64,000 nucleotides of DNA from Chrysemys picta bellii (Eukaryota), in contig NC_088800.1 in assembly GCF_011386835.1 (NCBI RefSeq), positions 1,178,001-1,242,000 on the forward strand, read 5' to 3'. Positions 1 to 19,637 of the stretch are shown piece after piece (position 1 is the stretch's first letter; the number at the start of each line of letters is the position of its first letter). The position numbers and the translations under genes were made by a program. The notes below the pieces were generated by a model. The model had not been told where the DNA came from. It made no database searches and was given only the letters and a program-made list of their open reading frames with translations.

Positions 1-441
1 CTGCGCCTACCCCAGGTACACAGCCAGCCTGTGCCGGGCTCTGTCCTGCCTGGCACCCTGGTGCCAGGGGGTGCGAGGAGAGTCCAGCTGGGGGCTTGTG
101 TGGGGAGCTGGGCTGCACGTCCCCATCGCCCGGCCAGGCTGGCCCCTGTGGGTGGGGCAGCAAACATCCAGGGGGCAGGGAGGGTAACAGAGCAGGCCCC
201 GCGGGGGGTCTTCGGGATGGACTGGCCACTCTGCTGGCTGGCAGGCAGGGCTCAGTCTGTGGGGTATTAGCAACAGGGGATGGGGGGGTCCATTGCCGGG
301 GAGGGTGGGAGGGGGCGGGCGGGGTCCATTGCCGGGGGGGTGGGGGTGGGAGGAGGCGGGGCCATTGGCAAGCAGGGAGGGTGCAGAGGGCACGTCTGGT
401 GCTGTGGCGGGAGGACGTGAGCTTTGCAATTGGCTGTTTAG

Positions 442-589
442 GGCTAAACACATCAGCATCACGCTGGCTCTGAATACCACCACCTACCTGGACAAGGAGC
501 GGGAGTACCTGCCCTGGAGCGCCGCCCTCGACAACCTGGGTTACTTCCGCCTGATGTTTGACCGCAGTGAGGTGTACGGCCCCATGCAG
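442..589 (+). CDS. ANPEP: Aminopeptidase N, internal coding exon (gene continues upstream of the window)
   Basis: tttag|G acceptor and CAG|gtgag donor; encodes (R)[49 protein letters not shown], matching the M1 aminopeptidase N C-terminal domain (human [18 protein letters not shown]). Confidence 0.95.
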
Positions 590-920
590 GTGAGCCCCCG
601 CCTGCCCCAGGCCAGGTGGATTGCGGGCAGCATGGCTGGATGGCGCTCGGATGGCCACTCTGCCGTTCCCGCCTGTGCGGGGTCAGTTCAGCCGTGGGCC
701 TGGCACAAACGCAGGGCATAGGGTGGGCTCTGCAAATCGCCCCAGCGAGGCGGAGAGGCGGGCCCCAGAGGGTCGGAGCTGCCCGGGGAAGGGCATGGGG
801 TGGGGGGAAGGAGGCGGCAGGAGCCGGGGGTGCGCTGGGTGATCGTGGCGTGACGGGGGGAAGGCTCAGAGCTCCTGATCCTTCTGGCAAGTGGTGCTCA
901 CCCTGCCCATCTTCCCCCAG

Positions 921-1012
921 AAATACATCCGGAATCAGGTGACCCCCTTGTTCCAGTACTTTGGAAACATCACCTCCAACTGGACCAGGCTCCCGGACGG
1001 CTTGATGGAGCA
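921..1012 (+). CDS. ANPEP: Aminopeptidase N coding exon
   Basis: cccag|AAA acceptor, CA|gtgagt donor; KYIRNQVTPLFQYFGNITSNWTRLPDGLMEQ; phase fits both neighbours. Confidence 0.93.
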
Positions 1013-1687
1013 GTGAGTCCCAGCGCGGCACGTCCTCCGGCCAGCCACAGGGCAGGCCCTGCTCACCCGGCGCCCCTGGGGCCTGGAGAACTGGCTCCTC
1101 CCGTGACTGCTGCTGCCTCTTTTCCAAGGGGAGGGCTCTGGGCCCCCCTTTCCTGCCCCACCCCTCAGCCAAGGGGGGTACTGGGCATGGCTCCCAGAGT
1201 GCGGGCACGCTGGGGCCGGTTGGGTGGCCCTGTGTTACGGGCATATGCCACTCTGTGCCCAGTCCCAGGCACCCTCCAGACCCTGCCTCTCCTCTCGCTC
1301 TTCCTCTGCTCCAGCGGACCCCGAGAGGCCGGGCGTTCCCCTCCCCACTGGCGGGATGGCTGAGCTGGGCAGTGGCACCCGCTGGCAGGAGGCAGAAGGA
1401 GCTGCCACGCGGTGCCCGGTGGGAACTGCCCAGGGTGCACCTAGGCAGCACTGTCCCCGGTAGTGCCCACTGCTCGCAGCCTCAGAGCGAGGTGACCCCC
1501 ACCCAACCTGTACGGCGCCTGGCAGATGGGGCAGTGGGAGAGACTCCTCCTGGGCCCGGCTGGTGACGGGCCGGTGGGCGCCTGCCTCTGTCACGGTCAT
1601 TCTGCCTGGTCTCCCTGCCCGCCAGGCCTGGCTCCTAGGGCCCCTTCGCCGGGTCCAGCCGTTGACACGGCTCCTCTCCCCACTCAG

Positions 1688-1798
1688 GTACAACGAGATC
1701 AACGCCATCAGCACGGCCTGTTCCCAAGGTGTCCCTGAGTGCGCGCAGCTGGCGGCCGCCTTCTTCAACCAGTGGAAGCAAAACCCCAGCAACAACCC
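1688..1798 (+). CDS. ANPEP: Aminopeptidase N coding exon
   Basis: ctcag|G acceptor, CC|gtgagc donor; [37 protein letters not shown]. Confidence 0.95.
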
Positions 1799-1889
1799 GT
1801 GAGCCCTTCCCCGTGGCCTCTGGGCAGGGAGGAGGTGGCTGGGGGGATGGGCCGGGCTGGGCCATGGCGCTGTTCTGGGCTGGGGGGCA

Positions 1890-2216
1890 GGGCTGGACGG
1901 GCCTTGGTTCCCCCCTGGGTTGGGGCGCTGGGCTGGACCGGGTCGTGGCGCCCCCCTGGGATGGGGGGCAGGGCTGGACCGGGCCGTGGCGCCCCCCTGG
2001 GTTGGGGGACTGGGCTGGACCGGGTCGTGGCGCCCCCCTGGGTTGGGGGGCTGGGCTGGACCGGGTCGTGGCGCCCCCCTGGGTTGGGGGACTGGGCTGG
2101 ACCGGGTCGTGGCGCCCCCCTGGGATGGGGGGCAGGGCTGGACCAGGCCTTGGTTCCCCCCTGGGTTGGGGGGCTGGGCTGGACCGGGTCGTGGCGCCCC
2201 CCTGGGATGGGGGGCT
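1890..2216. repeat. 41-bp G-rich minisatellite (8 copies) in an ANPEP intron
   Basis: Unit gggctggaccgggtcgtggcgcccccctgggttgggggrct recurs at 1890, 1930, 1971, 2012, 2053, 2094, 2135, 2176. Confidence 0.92.
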
Positions 2217-2484
2217 GGGGCAGGCCCAAGGGGGAGTGCAGGCAGAATTTGCCTATTTCCAGCTGGTAAATACCCAGCTCCCTGGCGCTGCCTGGACCCT
2301 AGTGAGATGCTAGCCCTACGCATGGGCCCGCTCTCTCCGGGTGGGGGGTGCCCCCCCAGCACTCCTCCATGGGAGCCTCTCCCCATGGTCTGCTGTGCCA
2401 GGGCTCTGCTGAGTGGGGCCCGGTGCCTGAGTGCCGAGCGCGTTCCCCGGCACGGCCCCCGTGACAGGCATGTTCCCCCCCCAG

Positions 2485-2652
2485 GATCCCCCCGAACCTG
2501 CGCTCCTCCATCTACTGCAGCGCCATAGAGACGGGCAGCGAGGCAGACTGGGAGTTCCTCTGGCAGATGTTTAAAAACGCCACGGTGGTGGCCGAAGCCG
2601 ACAAGCTCCGCTCGGCCCTGGCCTGCAGCAAGGAGCCTTGGATCTTGAAAAG
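2485..2652 (+). CDS. ANPEP: Aminopeptidase N coding exon
   Basis: cccag|G acceptor, AG|gtgtgt donor; IPPNLRSSIYCSAIETGSEADWEFLWQMFKNATVVAEADKLRSALACSKEPWILKR; absent from the ORF track. Confidence 0.95.
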
Positions 2653-2835
2653 GTGTGTGGGGGACACAGCCGCCTTCGGGGAATGGGGGCCGTGGAGCCC
2701 ATCGGCGTAGGGATGGGGAGGATCCAGGCTGCCATGGGCACGGGGAAGGAGAAGGGTCTGGGGCTGCCTGCAGCGGTAGGTGGCCCTGCGCCTGCCACGG
2801 GTGCCGCGTACCAGCCCTGCCTGCCCCCTCCCCAG

Positions 2836-2976
2836 GTATCTGCAGTACTGCCTGGATCCCAGCAAAATCCGGAAGCAGGACGCCACCTCCACCATCAACA
2901 GCATCGCCAGTAACGTGGTGGGGCAGAGCCTGGCCTGGGACTTCATCCGGGGCAACTGGAAGACCCTTTTCAGCCA
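2836..2976 (+). CDS. ANPEP: Aminopeptidase N coding exon
   Basis: cccag|G acceptor, CA|gtgagt donor; [47 protein letters not shown]. Confidence 0.95.
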
Positions 2977-3335
2977 GTGAGTGCCACGGAGGGGCAGCCC
3001 GTGGGAGGGGGCTGGGGAATGCAGGGGAGCGATGGGGAGTGGAGGAGCGATGGGGAATGGGGGGAGCAATGGGGAGCCTGGGGGAGGGGGAGGAGCAAGA
3101 GGGGATGGGGAATGGGGGGGGGGGCGCTCTCAGTCTCTCTCCCCACACGTTATGTGCCCTTCGTGCCATCCTGGGCTCCTGTGGCTGCCTGGCGAAGAGC
3201 AGGGGGTGCTCCCTGCTCCTATGCCCGGGGCAGCCCCTCTGCTGAGCCTTGGTAGCTCTTTCCGGGATGCTGCCCCTTTGGGAGGAAGGCACCTCCCCCA
3301 TGCCCGCCTGCTCACCCCGCCCCTCCCCTCCACAG

Positions 3336-3417
3336 GTACGGCGGGGGCTCCTTCTCCTTCTCGGGCCTGATCCAGGTGGTGACGCAGCGGTTTGCCTCTG
3401 AGTTCGAGCTGCAGCAG
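3336..3417 (+). CDS. ANPEP: Aminopeptidase N coding exon
   Basis: cacag|G acceptor, CAG|gtgagg donor; YGGGSFSFSGLIQVVTQRFASEFELQQ. Confidence 0.95.
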
Positions 3418-4139
3418 GTGAGGCCCGTCCCAGGCCTATCCGTGCGCGGGGTGGTGGGGCCCCTCGGGAAGGGAGAGCCCCGTCCGGTCTGCTCTAGCCC
3501 TCCCCAGGGCCCGGCCGTCGCTCCCTGCAGCCTCTCCCCAGGGCCTGGCCCAGGTGGGCTGGGAGCCACCCGAGTGCAGGGGCTGGCACCATTTCGCGTG
3601 GGGTCGTCGGCGCTTCACAGCCCCAATCCGTTAGTGCAGCTCTGTCGCCCTTGCCCGGCCACCCTGCAGCAGAGGGATCCTGCCTCCCTGCCGGGCGGGC
3701 GAGTCCGTCAAGCCCCGTCACTTGGGGGCGAGCCAGGGCAGGTCTAGGGAGAGGTCCAGCTGTGATGCCAGCCCCAGGGATGGCAGCGCCCCGCTACCTC
3801 CAGACACACATAGCCTCTGCCCCATTTGTGGGGCCGCAGCCGAGGAACTGGTGCTGCAGGAAACCTCGCGTGTTACCGAAGCACCCCAAGGCTGCATGCC
3901 TGTCCCTTGGGGTTCACATCCTGGCCTCCCTCCCTGCGTGGCCGAGCAGCGCACAGACAGCTGCTTTCCTGCTCCTCCTGGGTCCATCCCTCTGGGCCTG
4001 CAGGTGTCTGGGGCTGCTTGGCGCCCTCCCCAGGTTTGGGGTGCCCGGGTGGTGCCAGGGCTGCATGAGGGCACCGCAGTGCACCGGCGCTGTCCTGCGG
4101 CCGCCCTCACTCCCTCTCGGGCCCGCTCTCTCTCGGCAG

Positions 4140-4292
4140 CTGGAGCAGTTCAAGGCAGACAACGCCGACGTGGGCTTTGGCTCGGGCACGCGGGCGCTGG
4201 AGCAGGCGCTGGAGAAGACCAAAGCTAATATCAAATGGGTGGCAGAGAACAAGCAGACGGTGCTGACGTGGTTTGAGACGGCAAGCAGCTGA
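4140..4292 (+). CDS. ANPEP: Aminopeptidase N terminal coding exon
   Basis: ggcag|CTG acceptor; [50 protein letters not shown] then TGA. Confidence 0.96.
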
Positions 4293-4732
4293 GAGGGTGA
4301 ACTCAGTAACGCCAACCCCTCCCACGTCTGCCTCCTCCCGCTGCTCGGGGGGGCTGTGCCCCGGTTCCTGAGCCCCACACCCTGGGCATGCAGCCTCCTG
4401 AACTCTCCTGTCATTGGGCCCATGTCCCCGCCCCAGAGAGCCCCCCGCCCCCGCCCCCCCCCCATTCTGCCTCCACTCCCAGAACACCCTGCACTGCCTG
4501 GGGCTCAGCCTGGCCGTGCTCCCACAATGCTTTGCACACGGGCCCCATTGACAGGGCCTCGCCACAGCCCTTGTTGCAGTGACTGTCCCAGGGAAGCCCA
4601 GGTGCCCGTGGGGTGGTCATGGGCAGACAGGAGGGTGAGGGCAGCGGGGCTGCTGACTGGGGAGCCCCCCAGCCCCGCCGCGGGCCAGGACATGTGTCTG
4701 CTGTATAGTCCTTCTCAGCCCCAGACATTGTA

Positions 4733-4738
4733 AATAAA
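4733..4738 (+). terminator. ANPEP polyadenylation signal (AATAAA)
   Basis: AATAAA about 440 nt after the ANPEP stop, in an AT-rich patch within GC-rich DNA. Confidence 0.75.
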
Positions 4739-5940
4739 GGCTTAATGTTAAATGGTAAAGCCATGGGGCTGGGGCTCGGCCCAGCGCCTCCTGCACTCCC
4801 ACAGCTCACTCCCACGCTCAGCTTGGGCAAGTGCCCGGGCCGTTCCCTTTGCCACCGGCATGGGCAGTGGTGGAGGAGAACGGGGGGGCAGGATGTGAGC
4901 AGGAGGTAAGGCGGCTCCGGGGACCGGGGAGTGGACATGCTGGGAGAACAGGAAACGAGCCACTCCTCACAGCCGGGGTGTCAGGCGGAGGGGCCAGCCC
5001 CTGCCTCAGGTGAGCTCTGCCCAGCCCGCTGAGGCTGTTAGGAGCCGGGGCGAAGTGGTGACGAAGGCCTGGCGGGGGGCTGTCTGACGGTACATGTCAG
5101 CGATCCCCAGGGGTAGTGCCGGTCCCAGCTCTGCTCCCAGACAGGGTCGGGAGGGCCGGCAGTGGGAGTCGGGCAGGCTGGCGCAGAGCGGGTGCCAGGG
5201 CGGGGGGGAGGACCAGCCCCGCTAAGGCACAGGAGCAGTGGGCCCTGGGGGCAGGGGGCACAGGCCCCATCACAGAGGCTAGAGGAGAGTTCCCTCCCTC
5301 CAGTCCATCCCTTCCCTCCATGGTGCCCGCTGGCACATCCAGAGCTCAGCCCAGCCTGGTTGTGAATCTCCCCCAGTGACGGGGCTCCCGTCCCTTCCCC
5401 GGCTGTCTACCCACTGCGCTGTCTGCTGGGGCAGGAGGCTCTGGCCGTGACCACGGAGCTGCAGTACCCGCAGGGCAAGGAGCTAGGGCTGCTCCGGGCA
5501 GGCCCAGAGTGGCAGTGGCAGGGCACAGGGCGTATAACGCAGGAGGTCCCAGCTATCTGGGGTAGGTACTTGGCCATCTCCTCCAGCTCTGGGCTGGAGA
5601 CACAGGCTGGGGGCAGGCGGGGGGCAGCAGGGACACTGGTTCTATGGAATAAGTTGTCCCAAAGGGATTGTTACCCTTTTCTATGGGTGTAGAGCCTGCA
5701 GATCCCAAGACACCTCACTCTGAGCCCTGGGACTTGGGCTGGGGGCCAGCCAGGGAGAGGCTGCTTTGCCTGATGATTTTGGCCCCGTCCCTGAGGATCT
5801 CAGCGGCTGGCAGGTGCCGTTGTCAGCGCAGCCCTCGGACCCGGCCCGGCAGGGACACAGCTTTGCAGCTTGGCGATGGGGTTGGTGCCCAGGTCTGAGC
5901 TGGGCTCTGGGTGCAGCGACCATTTGGAGAAGTGGCTGGG

Positions 5941-6031
5941 GCTGCAGGGCGTCTCTGGCTGCATCGGGGGGCAGCTCGGCAGCCCGGGGCTCTGGGCTGA
6001 GGCCGGAGGTGTGATGTGGCACCTGTGCAGG
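5941..6031 (-). promoter_or_regulatory. Orphan paralogous copy of the Mesp core promoter (T-box palindrome kept, TATA-like box lost)
   Basis: Gapless hand alignment to the MESP1 promoter (18721-18811): about 20 mismatches in 91 nt; AGGTGccacaTCACACCT conserved; CATAAA replaced by CCCAGA. Confidence 0.7.
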
Positions 6032-6090
6032 TCCAAGCCCGGGGATGCGGGAGGCAGCGGGTGGGGAACGGGGGGTACTCGGAGGCAGAG

Positions 6091-6625
6091 CATAAGAACA
6101 TAAGAACGGCCATACTGGGTCAGACCAAAGGTCCATCTAGCCCAGTATCCTGTCTACCGACAGTGGCCAATGCCAGGTGCCCCTGCGGGAGTGAACCTAA
6201 CTGGTAATGATCAAGTGATCTCTCTCCTGCCGTCCATCTCCACCCTCTGACAAACAGAGGCTAGGGACACCATTCCTTACCCACCCTGACTAATAGCCAT
6301 TAATGGACTTAACCACAATGAATTTATCCATTTCTCTTTTAAACCCTGTGATAGTCCTAGCCTTCACAACCTCCTCAGGTAAGGAGTTCCACGGGTTGAC
6401 TGTGTGCTGTGTGAAGAAGAACTTCCTTTGATTTGTTTTAAACCTGCTGCCTATTAATTTCATTTGGTGACCCCTAGTTCTTATATTACGGGAACAAGTA
6501 AATAACTTCCTTATTCACTTTCTCCACACCACACATGATTTTATAGACCTCTATCATATCCCCCCTTAGTTGCTTCTTTTCCAAGCTGAAAAGTCCTAGC
6601 CCCTTTAATCTCTCCTCATATGTGC
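6091..6625 (-). mobile_element. CR1 LINE 3' fragment
   Basis: cataagaacataagaacggcc terminal repeat; minus strand encodes [28 protein letters not shown] (CR1 ORF2 C-terminus). Confidence 0.9.
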
Positions 6626-7161
6626 CCTGTTCACCTGACTGCACGGTTCTGGAGTCACTTAGACAGCAGCACAATTTCCTTGCCAGGAATGTGACACCTC
6701 CATCTCTGTGTCCCCCCAGTGACCCCCGGCCCCAGGAGTCCCCTTGACTGCCCTCTCCCTGTGACCCCCATGACCCACTGTGATTCGCCTGGCCCCATTG
6801 CCTCGTGACCCCCATCCTTGTGACCCCCATGACAACCCCACCCCACCCTCATGATTCCCCTGTCCCCGTGAGTCCCTGCCCATCTCCCTGAACACCCAGG
6901 TCCTCTGGCTACGTCTGGGGAGCAGGCCTGGAGCTGGGCTAAGGCCAAGACAGAGGCGCGCTGGGCTGCCGTTGCTGTTCTCCAGGCTGCAAAGGGGCTC
7001 GTGGGGCGAAATGGGTCCAGGGTGACTTCGTGCTCTGTGCAGTTGCCTCCAAGAAGTACCATGGGCAGGGGCTGCCCACGTGTGAAGCGCGCTTGCCTCA
7101 GTTCTGGCCTACATCCATGGCTCATTCTCCAGGCCACTGCCCAAGGGATGGTGAGACTTGT

Positions 7162-8175
7162 CAGCCCCACACAGCACCGGGCCCTGCCCAGCACCGCGCT
7201 GGGTCCCCCATCCCCACACAGACCCAGGCCCTGCCCAGCACCGCGCTGGGTTCCCCCCCCCAGCCCCACACAGCACCGGGCCCTGCCCAGCACTGCGCTG
7301 GGTCCCCCCGCTCCCAGCCCCACACAGACCCAGGCCCTGCCCAGCACCGCGCTGGGTTCCCCCCCCCAGCCCCACACAGCACCGGGCCCTGCCCAGCACC
7401 GCGCTGGGTCCCCCCGCTCCCAGCCCCACACAGACCCAGGCCCTGCCCAGCACCGCGCTGGGTTCCCCCCCCCCCAGCCCCACACAGCACCGGGCCCTGC
7501 CCAGCACTGCGCTGGGTCCCCCCGCTCCCAGCCCCACACAGACCCAGGCCCTGCCCAGCACCGCGCTGGGTTCCCCCCCCCAGCCCCACACAGCACCGGG
7601 CCCTGCCCAGCACCGCGCTGGGTCCCCCCGCTCCCAGCCCCACACAGACCCAGGCCCTGCCCAGCACCGCGCTGGGTCCCCCATCCCCATCCCCACACAG
7701 ACCCAGGCCCTGCCCAGCACCGTGCTGGGTCCCCCCCTCAGCCCCACACAGCACCGGGCCCTGCCCAGCACCGCGCTGGGTCCCCCAGCCGCACACAGAC
7801 CCAGGCCCTGCCCAGCACCGCGCTGGGTTCCCCCCTCAGCCCCACACAGCACCGGGCCCTGCCCAGCACTGCGCTGGGTCCCCCCCCTCAGCCCCACACA
7901 GCACTGGGCCCTGCCCAGCACCGCGCTGGGTCCCCCCCCTCAGCCCCACACAGCACTGGGCCCTGCCCAGCACCGCGCTGGGTCCCCCCCCAGCCCCACA
8001 CAGACCCAGGCCCTGCCCAGCATCGCGCTGGGTCCCCCCGCCCCCAACCCCACACAGACCCAGGCCCTGGCCAGCACCACGCTGGGTCCTGCCCCCAGCC
8101 CCACACAGACCCAGGCCCTGCCCAGCACCGCGCTGCCCCCCCCCCCCCCAGCCCCACACAGACCCAGGCCCTGCT
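7162..8175. repeat. ~51-bp minisatellite (~20 copies) with two alternating variants
   Basis: Unit cagccccacacag[caccgg/acccag]gccctgcccagcaccgcgctgggtcccccc; explains the overlapping Pro/Gly-rich ORFs at 7001-8295. Confidence 0.92.
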
Positions 8176-8429
8176 CCCAGACAGCATATGAAGGGACTGG
8201 GTAATTCCCATGCAGGCAGCCCAGCCCTGCCCACACAGCCGGGTAGGGAGCTGACAGCGCCAGTGGGGGAGCTCCCCGTCCTGGCAGGGGACTAATGAAA
8301 TCTAGGACTGCTGAAGAAATGTAACGCGAGTGTGAGTCAGATCAGAGCATGGGAGGAGCAGGGACCCTGGTCATGCGGCTCCGTGCCCATCACCGTTCAC
8401 CCACCCTGCCTTCAGAAACTGTGTCCGCC

Positions 8430-8870
8430 TGCTCCCAGAGCCGCCCCACCTCGCCTGCTCCCAGAGCCGGGCCCTGCCTCCCGCAGCACCTGCCTGCTCC
8501 CAGAGCTGCCTCCCCAGCCCCCCTGCTCCCAGAGCCGCCCCACACAGCGCCCACCCGCTCCGAGAGCCGTCCCCCCAGCACCCAACCGCTCCCAGAGCTG
8601 CCCCACACAGCATCCGCCTGCTCCCAGAGCTGGGCCCCCAGTCCCCACCCGCTCCGAGAGCCACCCCCCGCTAGCGCCCACCCGCTCCCAGAGCAGGATC
8701 CACCCAGTGCCCACTCGCTCCCACCTGAGCCACTCCACCCAGCACCTGCCCATGCCCAGAGCCACCCCTGCTCCCCAGTACCTGCCTGCTCCTAGAGCTG
8801 TTTCCCCCGCACAGCACCTACCTGCTTCCAGAGAAACCCACCCAGCACCCGCCCGCTCCCAGAGCTGGGT
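8430..8870. repeat. Degenerate C-rich repeat with ctcccagagc core
   Basis: cc(c/t)gctcccagagc recurs roughly every 25-35 bp. Confidence 0.7.
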
Positions 8871-8955
8871 CCACCAGCCCACTCAGTGAGCAACAAACCC
8901 GGCAGAGTGACCCTACAATAACAAACCAGCACGAACAAGGGCAGGATGTAAAGGG

Positions 8956-8961
8956 TTTAAT
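8956..8961 (-). terminator. Putative MESP2 polyadenylation signal (ATTAAA)
   Basis: tttaat on the + strand, about 90 nt past the predicted MESP2 stop. Confidence 0.5.
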
Positions 8962-9049
8962 CAGAAAGGCATTTCCCTGCCAGGCACAGCCGGTGTGACG
9001 AGCGGGCCCCGGCAGGGACCTGCCGAGAGCAGAGCTGCTACACTGAGCG

Positions 9050-10072: not shown

Positions 10073-11083
10073 CTGGTAGAAAGCAGCCAGCAGGGGGCAG
10101 TGCGTGGGTGATGTCCAGTGCCTTGCGTCCGTGGCTCCGATCCCATTGGGCTCCGGGGGGGCTGCCGGGTCAGTGCAGGATCCCCAGGACGCTGTGCCAT
10201 GGGGCTCTGGAGGGCTCCCTGCCTTGGGGCGGGAGGTGGGTGAGCCCCAGGCCATTATGTCTGAGATCTGGGCCCCACGGAGCTCCAGGGGAGTCCCTGT
10301 TTCAGAGCAGGAGGTGGGTGACACCCAGGATGCTGCTCCAGTACTTTGAGTCCAAACCAGCTCGGGGGGTGTCCCTGGGGCAGGGCAGTAAGGGGGCGAA
10401 AGCCAAGAGGCTGTGTCTGTGCCGAGTGCCCTGTGCGGCTCGGGGGGTGTCCCTGCGGCAGGGCAGCAGGTGGACGACATCCAGGACTCTGCGGCCGGGG
10501 GGGACCCCTCCCACGGGGCTGGAGATGCTGCCTGGAGGCCAGGGGTCCTGGCCTGGCAGCAACCCAGCCCCTCGGGGCAGAGGGGGCAGTGCCGGCGTGG
10601 GCCCCCTCTCCTCTGGGCCAGCGTCTCCTCGTTGAGCCCCAGCAACTCCGACAGGTGGGAGATGTAGCGGATGGCGAGGCGCAGGGTCTCGATCTTGGTC
10701 AGGCTCTGGCCGGCCGGTGCCACCGAGGGGGGCAGGTAGCGTCGCAGGGTGTGGAGAGCCTTGGACAGGTTCCTCATGCGCAGCTTCTCCCGCTCGCTGG
10801 CGCTCTGCCTCTGCCCGCCGCCTGCCCTGCACTGTGCCCTCTGGCTGCTGTGGCAGGGATCTGCCCGGTGCTTGGGGGGCAGAGCGGGTGCTTGCCCCGG
10901 GAGGCAGCCGTGGAGGGGCTCCCGGGAAGCCAGGAGTGCAGAAGAAGGGGACAGGCTATAGGAGTCTGAGGAGGAGGTGGGAGAGGTGGAGTCTGAGTGG
11001 GCCCAGCCCCACTCCTGCAGCAGGGCCTGGCTTGGGAGTAGCTGGAGGTCCTGGGCTAGGAGCTGGGCAGGACAGCTGGCCAT
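10073..11083 (-). CDS. MESP2: Mesoderm posterior bHLH factor 2, exon 1
   Basis: ATG at 11083; Mesp b[57 protein letters not shown] plus CPLCP; ends LAAFYQ|gtacgc; tail-to-tail with ANPEP as in human. Confidence 0.93.
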
Positions 11084-11141
11084 GGTGTCAGGGCTTGGGG
11101 CTTCTCAGGCTGCGTGTGGGGAGAGCGCAGCAGCCCTGGGC

Positions 11142-11316
11142 TTTATGCTGAGGCTGGAGGTGTGAAGTGGCACCTTCCCAGGTTGCATGGAGGTGTCAAA
11201 ACCCACAGAGGCCTGGCTGGGGCTGAGGCAGGAGGCCCCTGGGAAAGCCAGCCCCATTTGCAGAGGTGTCAGTTCTGACTCCTCTGCCCTTTAATTGGGG
11301 CTGCCTGAGCTGGGAA
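11142..11316 (-). promoter_or_regulatory. MESP2 proximal promoter / presomitic enhancer: TATA-like box, three T-box sites, RBPJ-like sites
   Basis: CATAAA (11142-11147), AGGTGTGAagtggCACCT (11158-11175), AGGTGTCA (11191-11198 and 11264-11271), TGGGAA cores (11175-11180, 11240-11245, 11311-11316); fits known Tbx6 plus Notch control of Mesp2. Confidence 0.7.
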
Positions 11317-18659: not shown

Positions 18660-18761
18660 TTCAAAGGAGCTCTCTCCCCCAGGCCCTCCAGCCCCCCAGG
18701 GCTTTGATGTGCTGATGGTCCCTGCGAAGGTGCCACTTCACACCTCCGGCCTCAGCATAAA
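18660..18761 (+). promoter_or_regulatory. MESP1 proximal promoter: two TCF/LEF sites, T-box palindrome, TATA-like box
   Basis: TTCAAAG (18660-18666), CTTTGAT (18702-18708), AGGTGccactTCACACCT (18728-18745), CATAAA (18756-18761). Confidence 0.65.
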
Positions 18762-18812
18762 GCCCGGGGCTGCGACGCTCTCCCCACACGCAGCCTGGGA
18801 AGCCCTGACGCC

Positions 18813-19637
18813 ATGGCCAGCTCTCCTGCCCAGCTCCTAGCCCCGGATCTCCTGCTGCCCCCAGGCCAGGCCCTGCTGCAGGAGTGGGGCAGGGCCCAGC
18901 CCAGCACGGAGGGGTACAGCAGCTGCTCCCCAACGCCCTCCACCGACTCCTGCGGCCTCTCGCCCCTCTACCCCCTCTGCCCAGCTCCCCAGGAGCCCTG
19001 CAGCAGCTGCCCTGCAGCCCCGAGCCTGGTGCTGACGCCAAGACGCAGGGCTGGCCTGTGCCCAGCCTACGGGAGCAGGAAGGGCAGCCGGGGAAGGGCA
19101 GGCGGCGGGCAGAGGCAGAGCGCCAGCGAGCGGGAGAAGCTGCGCATGAGGAACCTGTCCAAGGCTCTCCACACCCTGCGACGCTACCTGCCCCCCTCGG
19201 TGGCACCGGCCGGCCAGAGCCTGACCAAGATCGAGACCCTGCGCCTCGCCATCCGCTACATCTCCCACCTGTCGGAGCTGCTGGGGCTCAGCGAGGAGAC
19301 GCTGGCCCAGAGGAGAGGGGGCCCACGCCGGCACTGCCCCCTCTGCCCCGAGGGGCTGGGTTGCTGCCAGGCCAGGACCCCTGGCCTCCAGGCAGCATCT
19401 CCAGCCCCGTGGGAGGGGTCCCCCCCGGCCGCAGAGTCCTGGGTGTCGTCCACCTGCTGCCCTGCCGCAGGGACACCCCCCGAGCCGCACAGGGCACTCA
19501 GCACAGACACAGCCTCTTGGCTTTCGCCCCCTTACTGCCCTGCCCCAGGGGACCCCGAGCCGCACAGGGCACGAATCCTGGATGCGGGGCCGATGCTGCT
19601 GCCAGCTGAGTTTGCAGACATGGGTCTGTCCTCCCAG
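18813..19637 (+). CDS. MESP1: Mesoderm posterior bHLH factor 1, exon 1
   Basis: ATG at 18813; full Mesp bHLH plus CPLCP; ends DMGLSSQ|gtatgt in phase 0; head-to-head with MESP2 as in human. Confidence 0.92.

Follow-up and report, generated by a model that had tools for sequence, protein, structure and literature searches.

Structure of the MESP-ANPEP locus and identification of a third promoter copy

The window analysed here is a stretch of 64,000 nt from Chrysemys picta bellii (NCBI RefSeq assembly GCF_011386835.1, contig NC_088800.1, positions 1,178,001 to 1,242,000 of the forward strand), and coordinates given below without a further name refer to it. It holds the 3' end of ANPEP followed by MESP2 and MESP1, with MESP1 (+) and MESP2 (-) arranged head to head. 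Between MESP2 and ANPEP lies a third segment homologous to the core promoters of both MESP genes, hereafter referred to as copy 3. The features of the locus are as follows.

4140-4755 (+): last coding exon of ANPEP (stop codon at 4292) and 3'UTR (AATAAA at 4733), convergent to copy 3; supported by the end of a contig of run X6 at 4753
5868-6032 (-), 165 bases: copy 3, probable relic of a Mesp proximal promoter, 5'UTR and first ~20 codons; recognised by BLASTN to MESP1 and MESP2 and by orthologs in five other turtles
5921-5923 (-): downstream ATG of copy 3, without a conserved ORF (ACG in Mauremys; 7-bp indel between testudinoids and sea turtles)
5937-5939 (-): site homologous to the MESP start codon, ATG lost; from the alignments and the ungapped register
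5991-5996 (-): former TATA box, CATAAA in MESP1 and MESP2 and CCCAGA in copy 3; from the alignments, gone in all six species carrying copy 3
6007-6024 (-): T-box palindrome-like 18-mer, AGGTGCCACATCACACCT; among the carriers of copy 3, unaltered only in Chrysemys and Platysternon
6072-6640 (-): fragment of a CR1-type retroelement; recognised by other copies in the window, a contig depth in the thousands and many loose contig ends at 6091-6099
11092-11183 (-): core promoter of MESP2 (ATG at 11083, exon 1 running downwards), paralogous to copy 3 by sequence comparison
18721-18826 (+): core promoter of MESP1 (ATG at 18813), paralogous to copy 3 by sequence comparison

Copy 3 has the orientation of MESP2 and is situated about 3 kb beyond the MESP2 stop codon and about 1.2 kb from the poly(A) site of ANPEP. 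The original prediction, made by inspection of the letters, had reported an ungapped match to the MESP1 promoter of about 71 of 91 positions, and the count for 5941-6031(-) against 18721-18811 is exactly 71/91; against the MESP2 promoter (11092-11182(-)) it is 68/91, also without gaps. When the 91-mer was compared with the whole window at all offsets and on both strands, the mean was 25 identities (sd 4.9) and the next best site reached 48/91. By BLASTN, 5926-6031 matched MESP1 18826-18721 (E 1.4e-16) and 5947-6032 matched MESP2 11098-11183 (E 1.7e-15). With 1/-1 scoring, the alignment to MESP2 was extended to 5868-6032 versus 11025-11183 (70.7% of 167 columns, E 2e-17) and enters the MESP2 coding sequence by about 58 bp. 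The match is uneven along the segment: of the 33 bases that extend from the 18-mer to the TATA position, 32 agree with MESP1, and over the remaining 58 positions of the 91-mer the agreement is 67%.

The landmarks that had been read from the Chrysemys letters are all in place. The T-box palindrome is retained at 6024-6007(-) and differs from the 18-mer of MESP1 and MESP2 by a single change, T to A, in the spacer. The replacement of CATAAA by CCCAGA is located at 5996-5991, and an ATG is present at 5923, within the segment that is homologous to the 5' coding sequence of MESP2. Likewise, the CR1-type repeat has its end at about 6072-6093, some 48-60 bp upstream, close to the 60 bp that had been given; counted from the 18-mer, the insertion is ~48 bp upstream. 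This repeat contains a CR1 ORF2-like tail in the ORF 6486-6830.

The window contains three copies of the Mesp core promoter, all of them associated with Mesp. The contig depth over 5876-5987 is that of the unique flanks, and it rises into the thousands beyond 6092, in the CR1. A dispersed repeat matching many unrelated loci was thus rejected as the identity of copy 3.

Two minisatellites, at 7162-8174 (periods of 54 and 106 bp) and 8473-8865 (about 31 and 63 bp), occupy much of the spacer between the 3' end of MESP2 and copy 3, and yield long spurious proline-rich ORFs on both strands. In the same spacer, upstream of the CR1, the block 6690-6840(-) carries five GGGGTCAY motifs and a AGGTGTCACA motif and seems well conserved, with 11 steps in 64 sites among eight turtles including tortoises. 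Its part 6760-6839 was considered as a T-box cluster and rejected, since 8% of neutral windows are equally low and the motifs differ between species.

Distribution of copy 3 among species

We compared 11 orthologous loci with 10-kb flanks, together with the MESP1 locus of Carettochelys; the loci were obtained by a protein search with MESP2 exon 1 and from a cluster listing. The query for MESP2 exon 1 was its open frame, and ANPEP was represented by its last exon. At all three promoters, the Chrysemys picta bellii locus and the window agree to 100%. Five further turtles have copy 3 in the syntenic position, between MESP2 and ANPEP. The identity to Chrysemys is 91% in Platysternon and in Mauremys mutica, and 77-79%, with gaps, in the sea turtles Caretta, Chelonia and Dermochelys. 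It is absent from the pleurodire Emydura, from Alligator and from the bird Gavia, in which the spacer measures 1.2-1.9 kb. The Carettochelys locus, reached through MESP1, has no MESP2 within 10 kb and hence says nothing on copy 3.

Copy 3 is also absent from the tortoises Gopherus and Chelonoidis. Both genera have the same breakpoints, at the equivalents of window positions 6514 and 5624; the interval between them is filled by a C-rich minisatellite of about 80-bp period (L002 13767-15103; L009 14164-15357, with an N gap). It supplants part of the CR1, copy 3 and about 300 bp downstream. Since the breakpoints are identical, the replacement probably happened once, in the ancestor of the tortoises. 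The presence of copy 3 in both sea turtles and testudinoids dates it at least to their common ancestor, with a later loss in tortoises.

Several other rearrangements were observed around copy 3. In Platysternon (L001 15341-16559), a minisatellite of 42-bp period with about 29 units has grown from window 4910-4952 and supplants 4952-5909; a gene of 451 residues annotated on it, without a Pfam hit, is probably an annotation artefact. Window 5449-5828, a segment of 380 bp just downstream of copy 3, is gone in Caretta and Dermochelys with identical breakpoints. It is present in Mauremys, and its part 5449-5566 is present in Emydura, a pattern which points to a deletion in the sea-turtle ancestor. 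In the Chelonia mydas locus (L005, from the old gappy assembly GCA_000344595.1), a MESP1-type promoter faces ANPEP and a MESP2-type promoter stands on the far side, the opposite of the order in every other turtle locus. Given the N gaps on its flanks, this is probably a scaffold inversion, and the copy-3 sequence alone was used from this locus. The Platysternon MESP2 protein (TFK04360.1) is mislabelled "solute carrier family 25 member 38" in the public record, and the Mauremys and Trachemys gene models fuse MESP1 with the adjoining 7tm_1 receptor gene.

Extent and origin of the duplicated unit

The sea turtles retain more of the upstream part. When the copy 3 of sea turtles was aligned with the MESP1 of the same animal, the match comprised 154 columns (E 2e-21) and continued to 60 bp upstream of the 18-mer; in the multiple alignment, a GTCACACAG motif of copy 3 coincides with the distal T-box site that MESP1 and MESP2 have about 100 bp upstream. 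From these alignments, the copied unit comprised at least about 260 bp and included the distal T-box site, the proximal palindrome, the TATA box, the 5'UTR and the first codons. In testudinoids, the upstream part was removed by a 13-bp deletion and by the CR1 insertion, which severs copy 3 from its former distal T-box site. This insertion is found in Platysternon, in Mauremys and partly in tortoises, and not in sea turtles. Promoter sequence is part of copy 3, which was therefore copied at the DNA level and is not a retrocopy.

At the other end, the homology breaks off in every species some 58 bp inside the coding sequence, and nothing resembling the remainder of Mesp exon 1 or a bHLH was seen at copy 3 in the six carriers. 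The absence of a bHLH downstream, already noticed in Chrysemys, was borne out by tblastn with the MESP2 bHLH, which found MESP1 and MESP2 only, in the window and in 12 loci; an intact third Mesp gene, envisaged for other turtle, crocodilian or bird loci, was found in none of the 12. The other candidates for Mesp coding remnants, in 1-9000 and in all loci, were proline-rich low-complexity noise only and were rejected. The proposal that the segment is the remnant of a third Mesp gene fits in that it is a true paralogous promoter with 5'UTR and about 20 codons, shared by six cryptodirans; a whole gene may once have stood there.

In the promoter tree, the six copy-3 sequences form one clade (100/99 support) that falls outside the MESP2 clade and nearer to MESP1, a placement with weak support. 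The stem of this clade measures 0.35 changes per site, versus about 0.05-0.1 within the crown. These data bear on a variant of our preferred explanation that differs from it in origin alone, namely that a short 5' fragment (promoter, 5'UTR and first codons, at least about 260 bp) was all that was ever copied and a third Mesp gene never existed. The common end of the homology and the lack of the rest of exon 1 and of a bHLH in all six carriers are what such a fragment would leave. Nevertheless, the long stem is more easily explained by divergence as a working paralog before death, and deletions and minisatellites are frequent enough in the region that they could have erased a gene body. We regard the fragment-only origin as possible, but somewhat less likely than not.

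Substitution rate of copy 3 and state of its T-box site

Rates were measured as parsimony steps per ungapped site on the accepted tree of the six species. Copy 3 shows 0.262 steps per site (27/103), similar to the last intron of ANPEP (0.252) and the ANPEP 3'UTR (0.224). The values are 0.118 for the last coding exon of ANPEP, 0.098 for the MESP2 promoter and 0.080 for the MESP1 promoter (five species), so that copy 3 evolves about three times faster than the two MESP promoters. Among neutral windows of 103 sites, the median was 23 steps with a 5-95% range of 14-37; 31% of them had at least 27 steps, and none had 11 or fewer, that is, none was as low as the MESP1 and MESP2 promoters.

The same contrast is seen in the palindrome itself. 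The 18-mer AGGTGCCACTTCACACCT of MESP2 and MESP1 (11158-11175(-) and 18728-18745(+)), with the CATAAAG that follows it, is invariant in 19 of 19 turtle promoters from 10 species. It is unchanged also in the MESP1 of Gavia and of Carettochelys; the single Mesp promoter compared from Alligator retains only the TTCACACCT half and the TATA box. For MESP1 and MESP2 together this amounts to 0 steps in 36 sites, with a P of about 2e-4 under neutrality. In copy 3, the 18-mer has taken 4 steps in 18 sites, versus 4.3 expected under neutrality on the six-species tree; the supposition that the T-box is better conserved than its flanks therefore fails. Four of the six species have one private substitution each: Mauremys (TCACACGT), Chelonia (TCACAGCT), Dermochelys (GCACACCT) and Caretta (AGGTT). 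Three of these four changes fall in the (C/T)CACACCT half-site.

The start signals have fared no better. All six carriers lack the TATA box CATAAAG that follows the palindrome at a constant spacing in MESP1 and MESP2; its position reads CCCAGA in testudinoids, and the sea turtles have an extra 7-bp deletion beside it. The ATG homologous to the MESP start codon is likewise lost in all six. As to the ATG at 5923, it is ACG in Mauremys, a 7-bp indel right after it shifts the frame between testudinoids and sea turtles, and in Platysternon the 42-bp minisatellite begins directly after its position.

Two mouse enhancers depend on T-box motifs, namely the P2-enhancer close to Mesp2, with its four TBX6 sites, and the I-enhancer. 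That they may be shadow enhancers has been discussed, and after deletion of Mesp2 the P2-enhancer is able to act on Mesp1 and Anpep (PMC8791502). For Tbx6, the consensus is (C/T)CACACCT, with the core CACACCT cited in PMC5471307, and according to work cited there the activity of Tbx6 enhancers is higher with several clustered sites. A turtle counterpart of mouse Mesp2 "site B" was observed upstream of MESP2 at 11252-11283(-), about 100 bp upstream of the palindrome adjacent to the MESP2 TATA box, sharing TCAGAA and ACACCTCTGCAAATGGG with the mouse Tbx6 EMSA probe. The probe (PMC5471307) aligns there and not to the 18-mer, and the identification of the 18-mer with "site B" was rejected.

With this background, copy 3 might be read as a residual T-box-responsive element which, in emydids and Platysternon, would bind Tbx6, T or Eomes and act as a weak shadow enhancer for MESP2, MESP1 or ANPEP. 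The unaltered palindrome in Chrysemys and Platysternon, the 32/33 match to MESP1 from the 18-mer up to the TATA position, and the mouse P2-enhancer with its action on Mesp1 and Anpep would all fit such an element. However, the substitution rate is neutral, the palindrome has been hit independently in four other species, mostly in the half-site that matches the Tbx6 consensus, and tortoises have lost the element altogether. Moreover, there is no cluster of T-box sites in the copy 3 of Chrysemys, only the single palindrome: in testudinoids the CR1 insertion severed or destroyed the distal site, which sea turtles retain, and it is clustered sites that are reported to be more active (PMC5471307). 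We consider a residual element of this kind unlikely, and the T-box shadow enhancer put forward by the original prediction is not upheld by these comparisons. Neutral-looking turnover of copy 3 is, for its part, no proof that enhancer activity is absent. The 32/33 match, set against 67% over the other 58 positions, suggests that T-box-related constraint may have acted on copy 3 for some time along the stem lineage, although it could alternatively be due to fewer CpG sites in that stretch.

Transcripts across copy 3

The runs that hold the copy 3 stretch are available as assembled contigs, from which transcript starts and strand are not readable, and none of them is recorded as RNA. In run X6, a contig of depth 40, about 4-6 times that of its neighbours, covers 4443-4753 and ends 15 nt after the AATAAA at 4733-4738; position 4753 is likely to be the poly(A) site of ANPEP. 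Since this contig ends at the expected ANPEP cleavage site, the X6 run is probably RNA. Two further X6 contigs of depth 6-10 cover 4910-6103, and one of them, 5306-6103, passes unbroken through the start predicted for a transcript from copy 3 (about 5970) into the CR1. Run X11, from a relative with about 3% divergence, has a contig of low depth over 4463-5980 whose end at 5980 is 5 bases from a variant. Variants are seen in X6 and X11 at 5920 and 5976; the palindrome, to which X6 is the only one of the two to extend, shows none. Runs X1 and X3 contain words of the copy 3 stretch, yet have no contig pieces on its unique part.

The low-depth contigs of X6 and X11 could fit a reading in which copy 3 were the promoter of an unannotated non-coding RNA, transcribed from the minus strand towards the 3' end of ANPEP, the more so as X6 is probably RNA and the X11 contig ends about 10 bp from the predicted start. 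Yet a nearby variant, as at the X11 end, is a common cause of contig breaks, the X6 contig reads through the predicted start, and no run holding the stretch is recorded as RNA. In addition, the TATA box is missing in all species, no conserved ORF or ATG follows, no minus-strand poly(A) signal was found in 3000-6100, and conservation is not above neutral. Antisense overlap with ANPEP would require a long transcript, because the ANPEP transcript ends about 1.2 kb away. A promoter for an RNA antisense to ANPEP, the second function that had been suggested for copy 3, is accordingly very improbable.

Origin and fate of copy 3

The best explanation, to which we assign a probability of about 0.8 from the comparison of sequences, is that copy 3 stems from the 5' end of a duplicated Mesp gene and is a relic under neutral decay, probably without function since before the six carriers diverged. 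With more than 100 million years of neutral drift behind it, and with its loss in tortoises, it is most likely a dead relic and no working switch. The duplicate lay 3' of MESP2, in MESP2 orientation, by the common ancestor of sea turtles and testudinoids at the latest. Its TATA box and start codon were lost before that ancestor, the losses being common to six of six carriers. Thereafter, copy 3 drifted neutrally, collecting private hits in the palindrome, lineage-specific indels and, in testudinoids, the CR1 insertion that took the distal T-box site; in tortoises, it was wholly supplanted by the minisatellite. Under this history copy 3 probably does nothing today, and the intact palindrome of Chrysemys would be a chance survival under the slow mutation rates of turtles. 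A fuller history, in which stem cryptodirans had a working third Mesp gene downstream of MESP2 and the relic still has Tbx6/T/Eomes-dependent activity as an extra enhancer for MESP-ANPEP in emydids and Platysternon, appears to us distinctly unlikely.

Compared with known systems, copy 3 resembles the proximal promoters of MESP1 and MESP2 over the 18-mer, the spacer to the TATA position, the 5'UTR and the first codons, and in sea turtles also at the distal T-box site; it differs from them in having no TATA box, no homologous start codon and no bHLH gene, and in its roughly threefold faster evolution. With the mouse P2- and I-enhancers it shares a (C/T)CACACCT-type motif near a Mesp-type core promoter in an ANPEP-MESP2-MESP1 neighbourhood. 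However, their T-box sites are needed for activity, whereas the site of copy 3 is not maintained across species and stands alone in Chrysemys. As far as sequence evolution can tell, copy 3 is unlike these enhancers and "site B" in its working. A further parallel is provided by unprocessed pseudogene fragments and relics of tandem duplicates: like them, copy 3 adjoins the genes from which it was copied, its start signals are gone and its sequence drifts neutrally. It differs in retaining the extreme 5' end only, without a demonstrable pseudogene body.

As a relic, copy 3 matters little, being another decayed fragment of a tandem duplicate. It is of use as an internal control, because it presents what becomes of the T-box/TATA core of Mesp when slowly evolving turtle DNA has been free of selection for more than 100 million years. 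Neutral DNA is still about 85% identical across turtle families, so in turtles an intact motif in a single genome is no evidence of function. Against the decay of copy 3, the invariance of the 18-mer and TATA box in turtle MESP1 and MESP2, with the 18-mer also kept in bird MESP1, is a clean sign of strong constraint.
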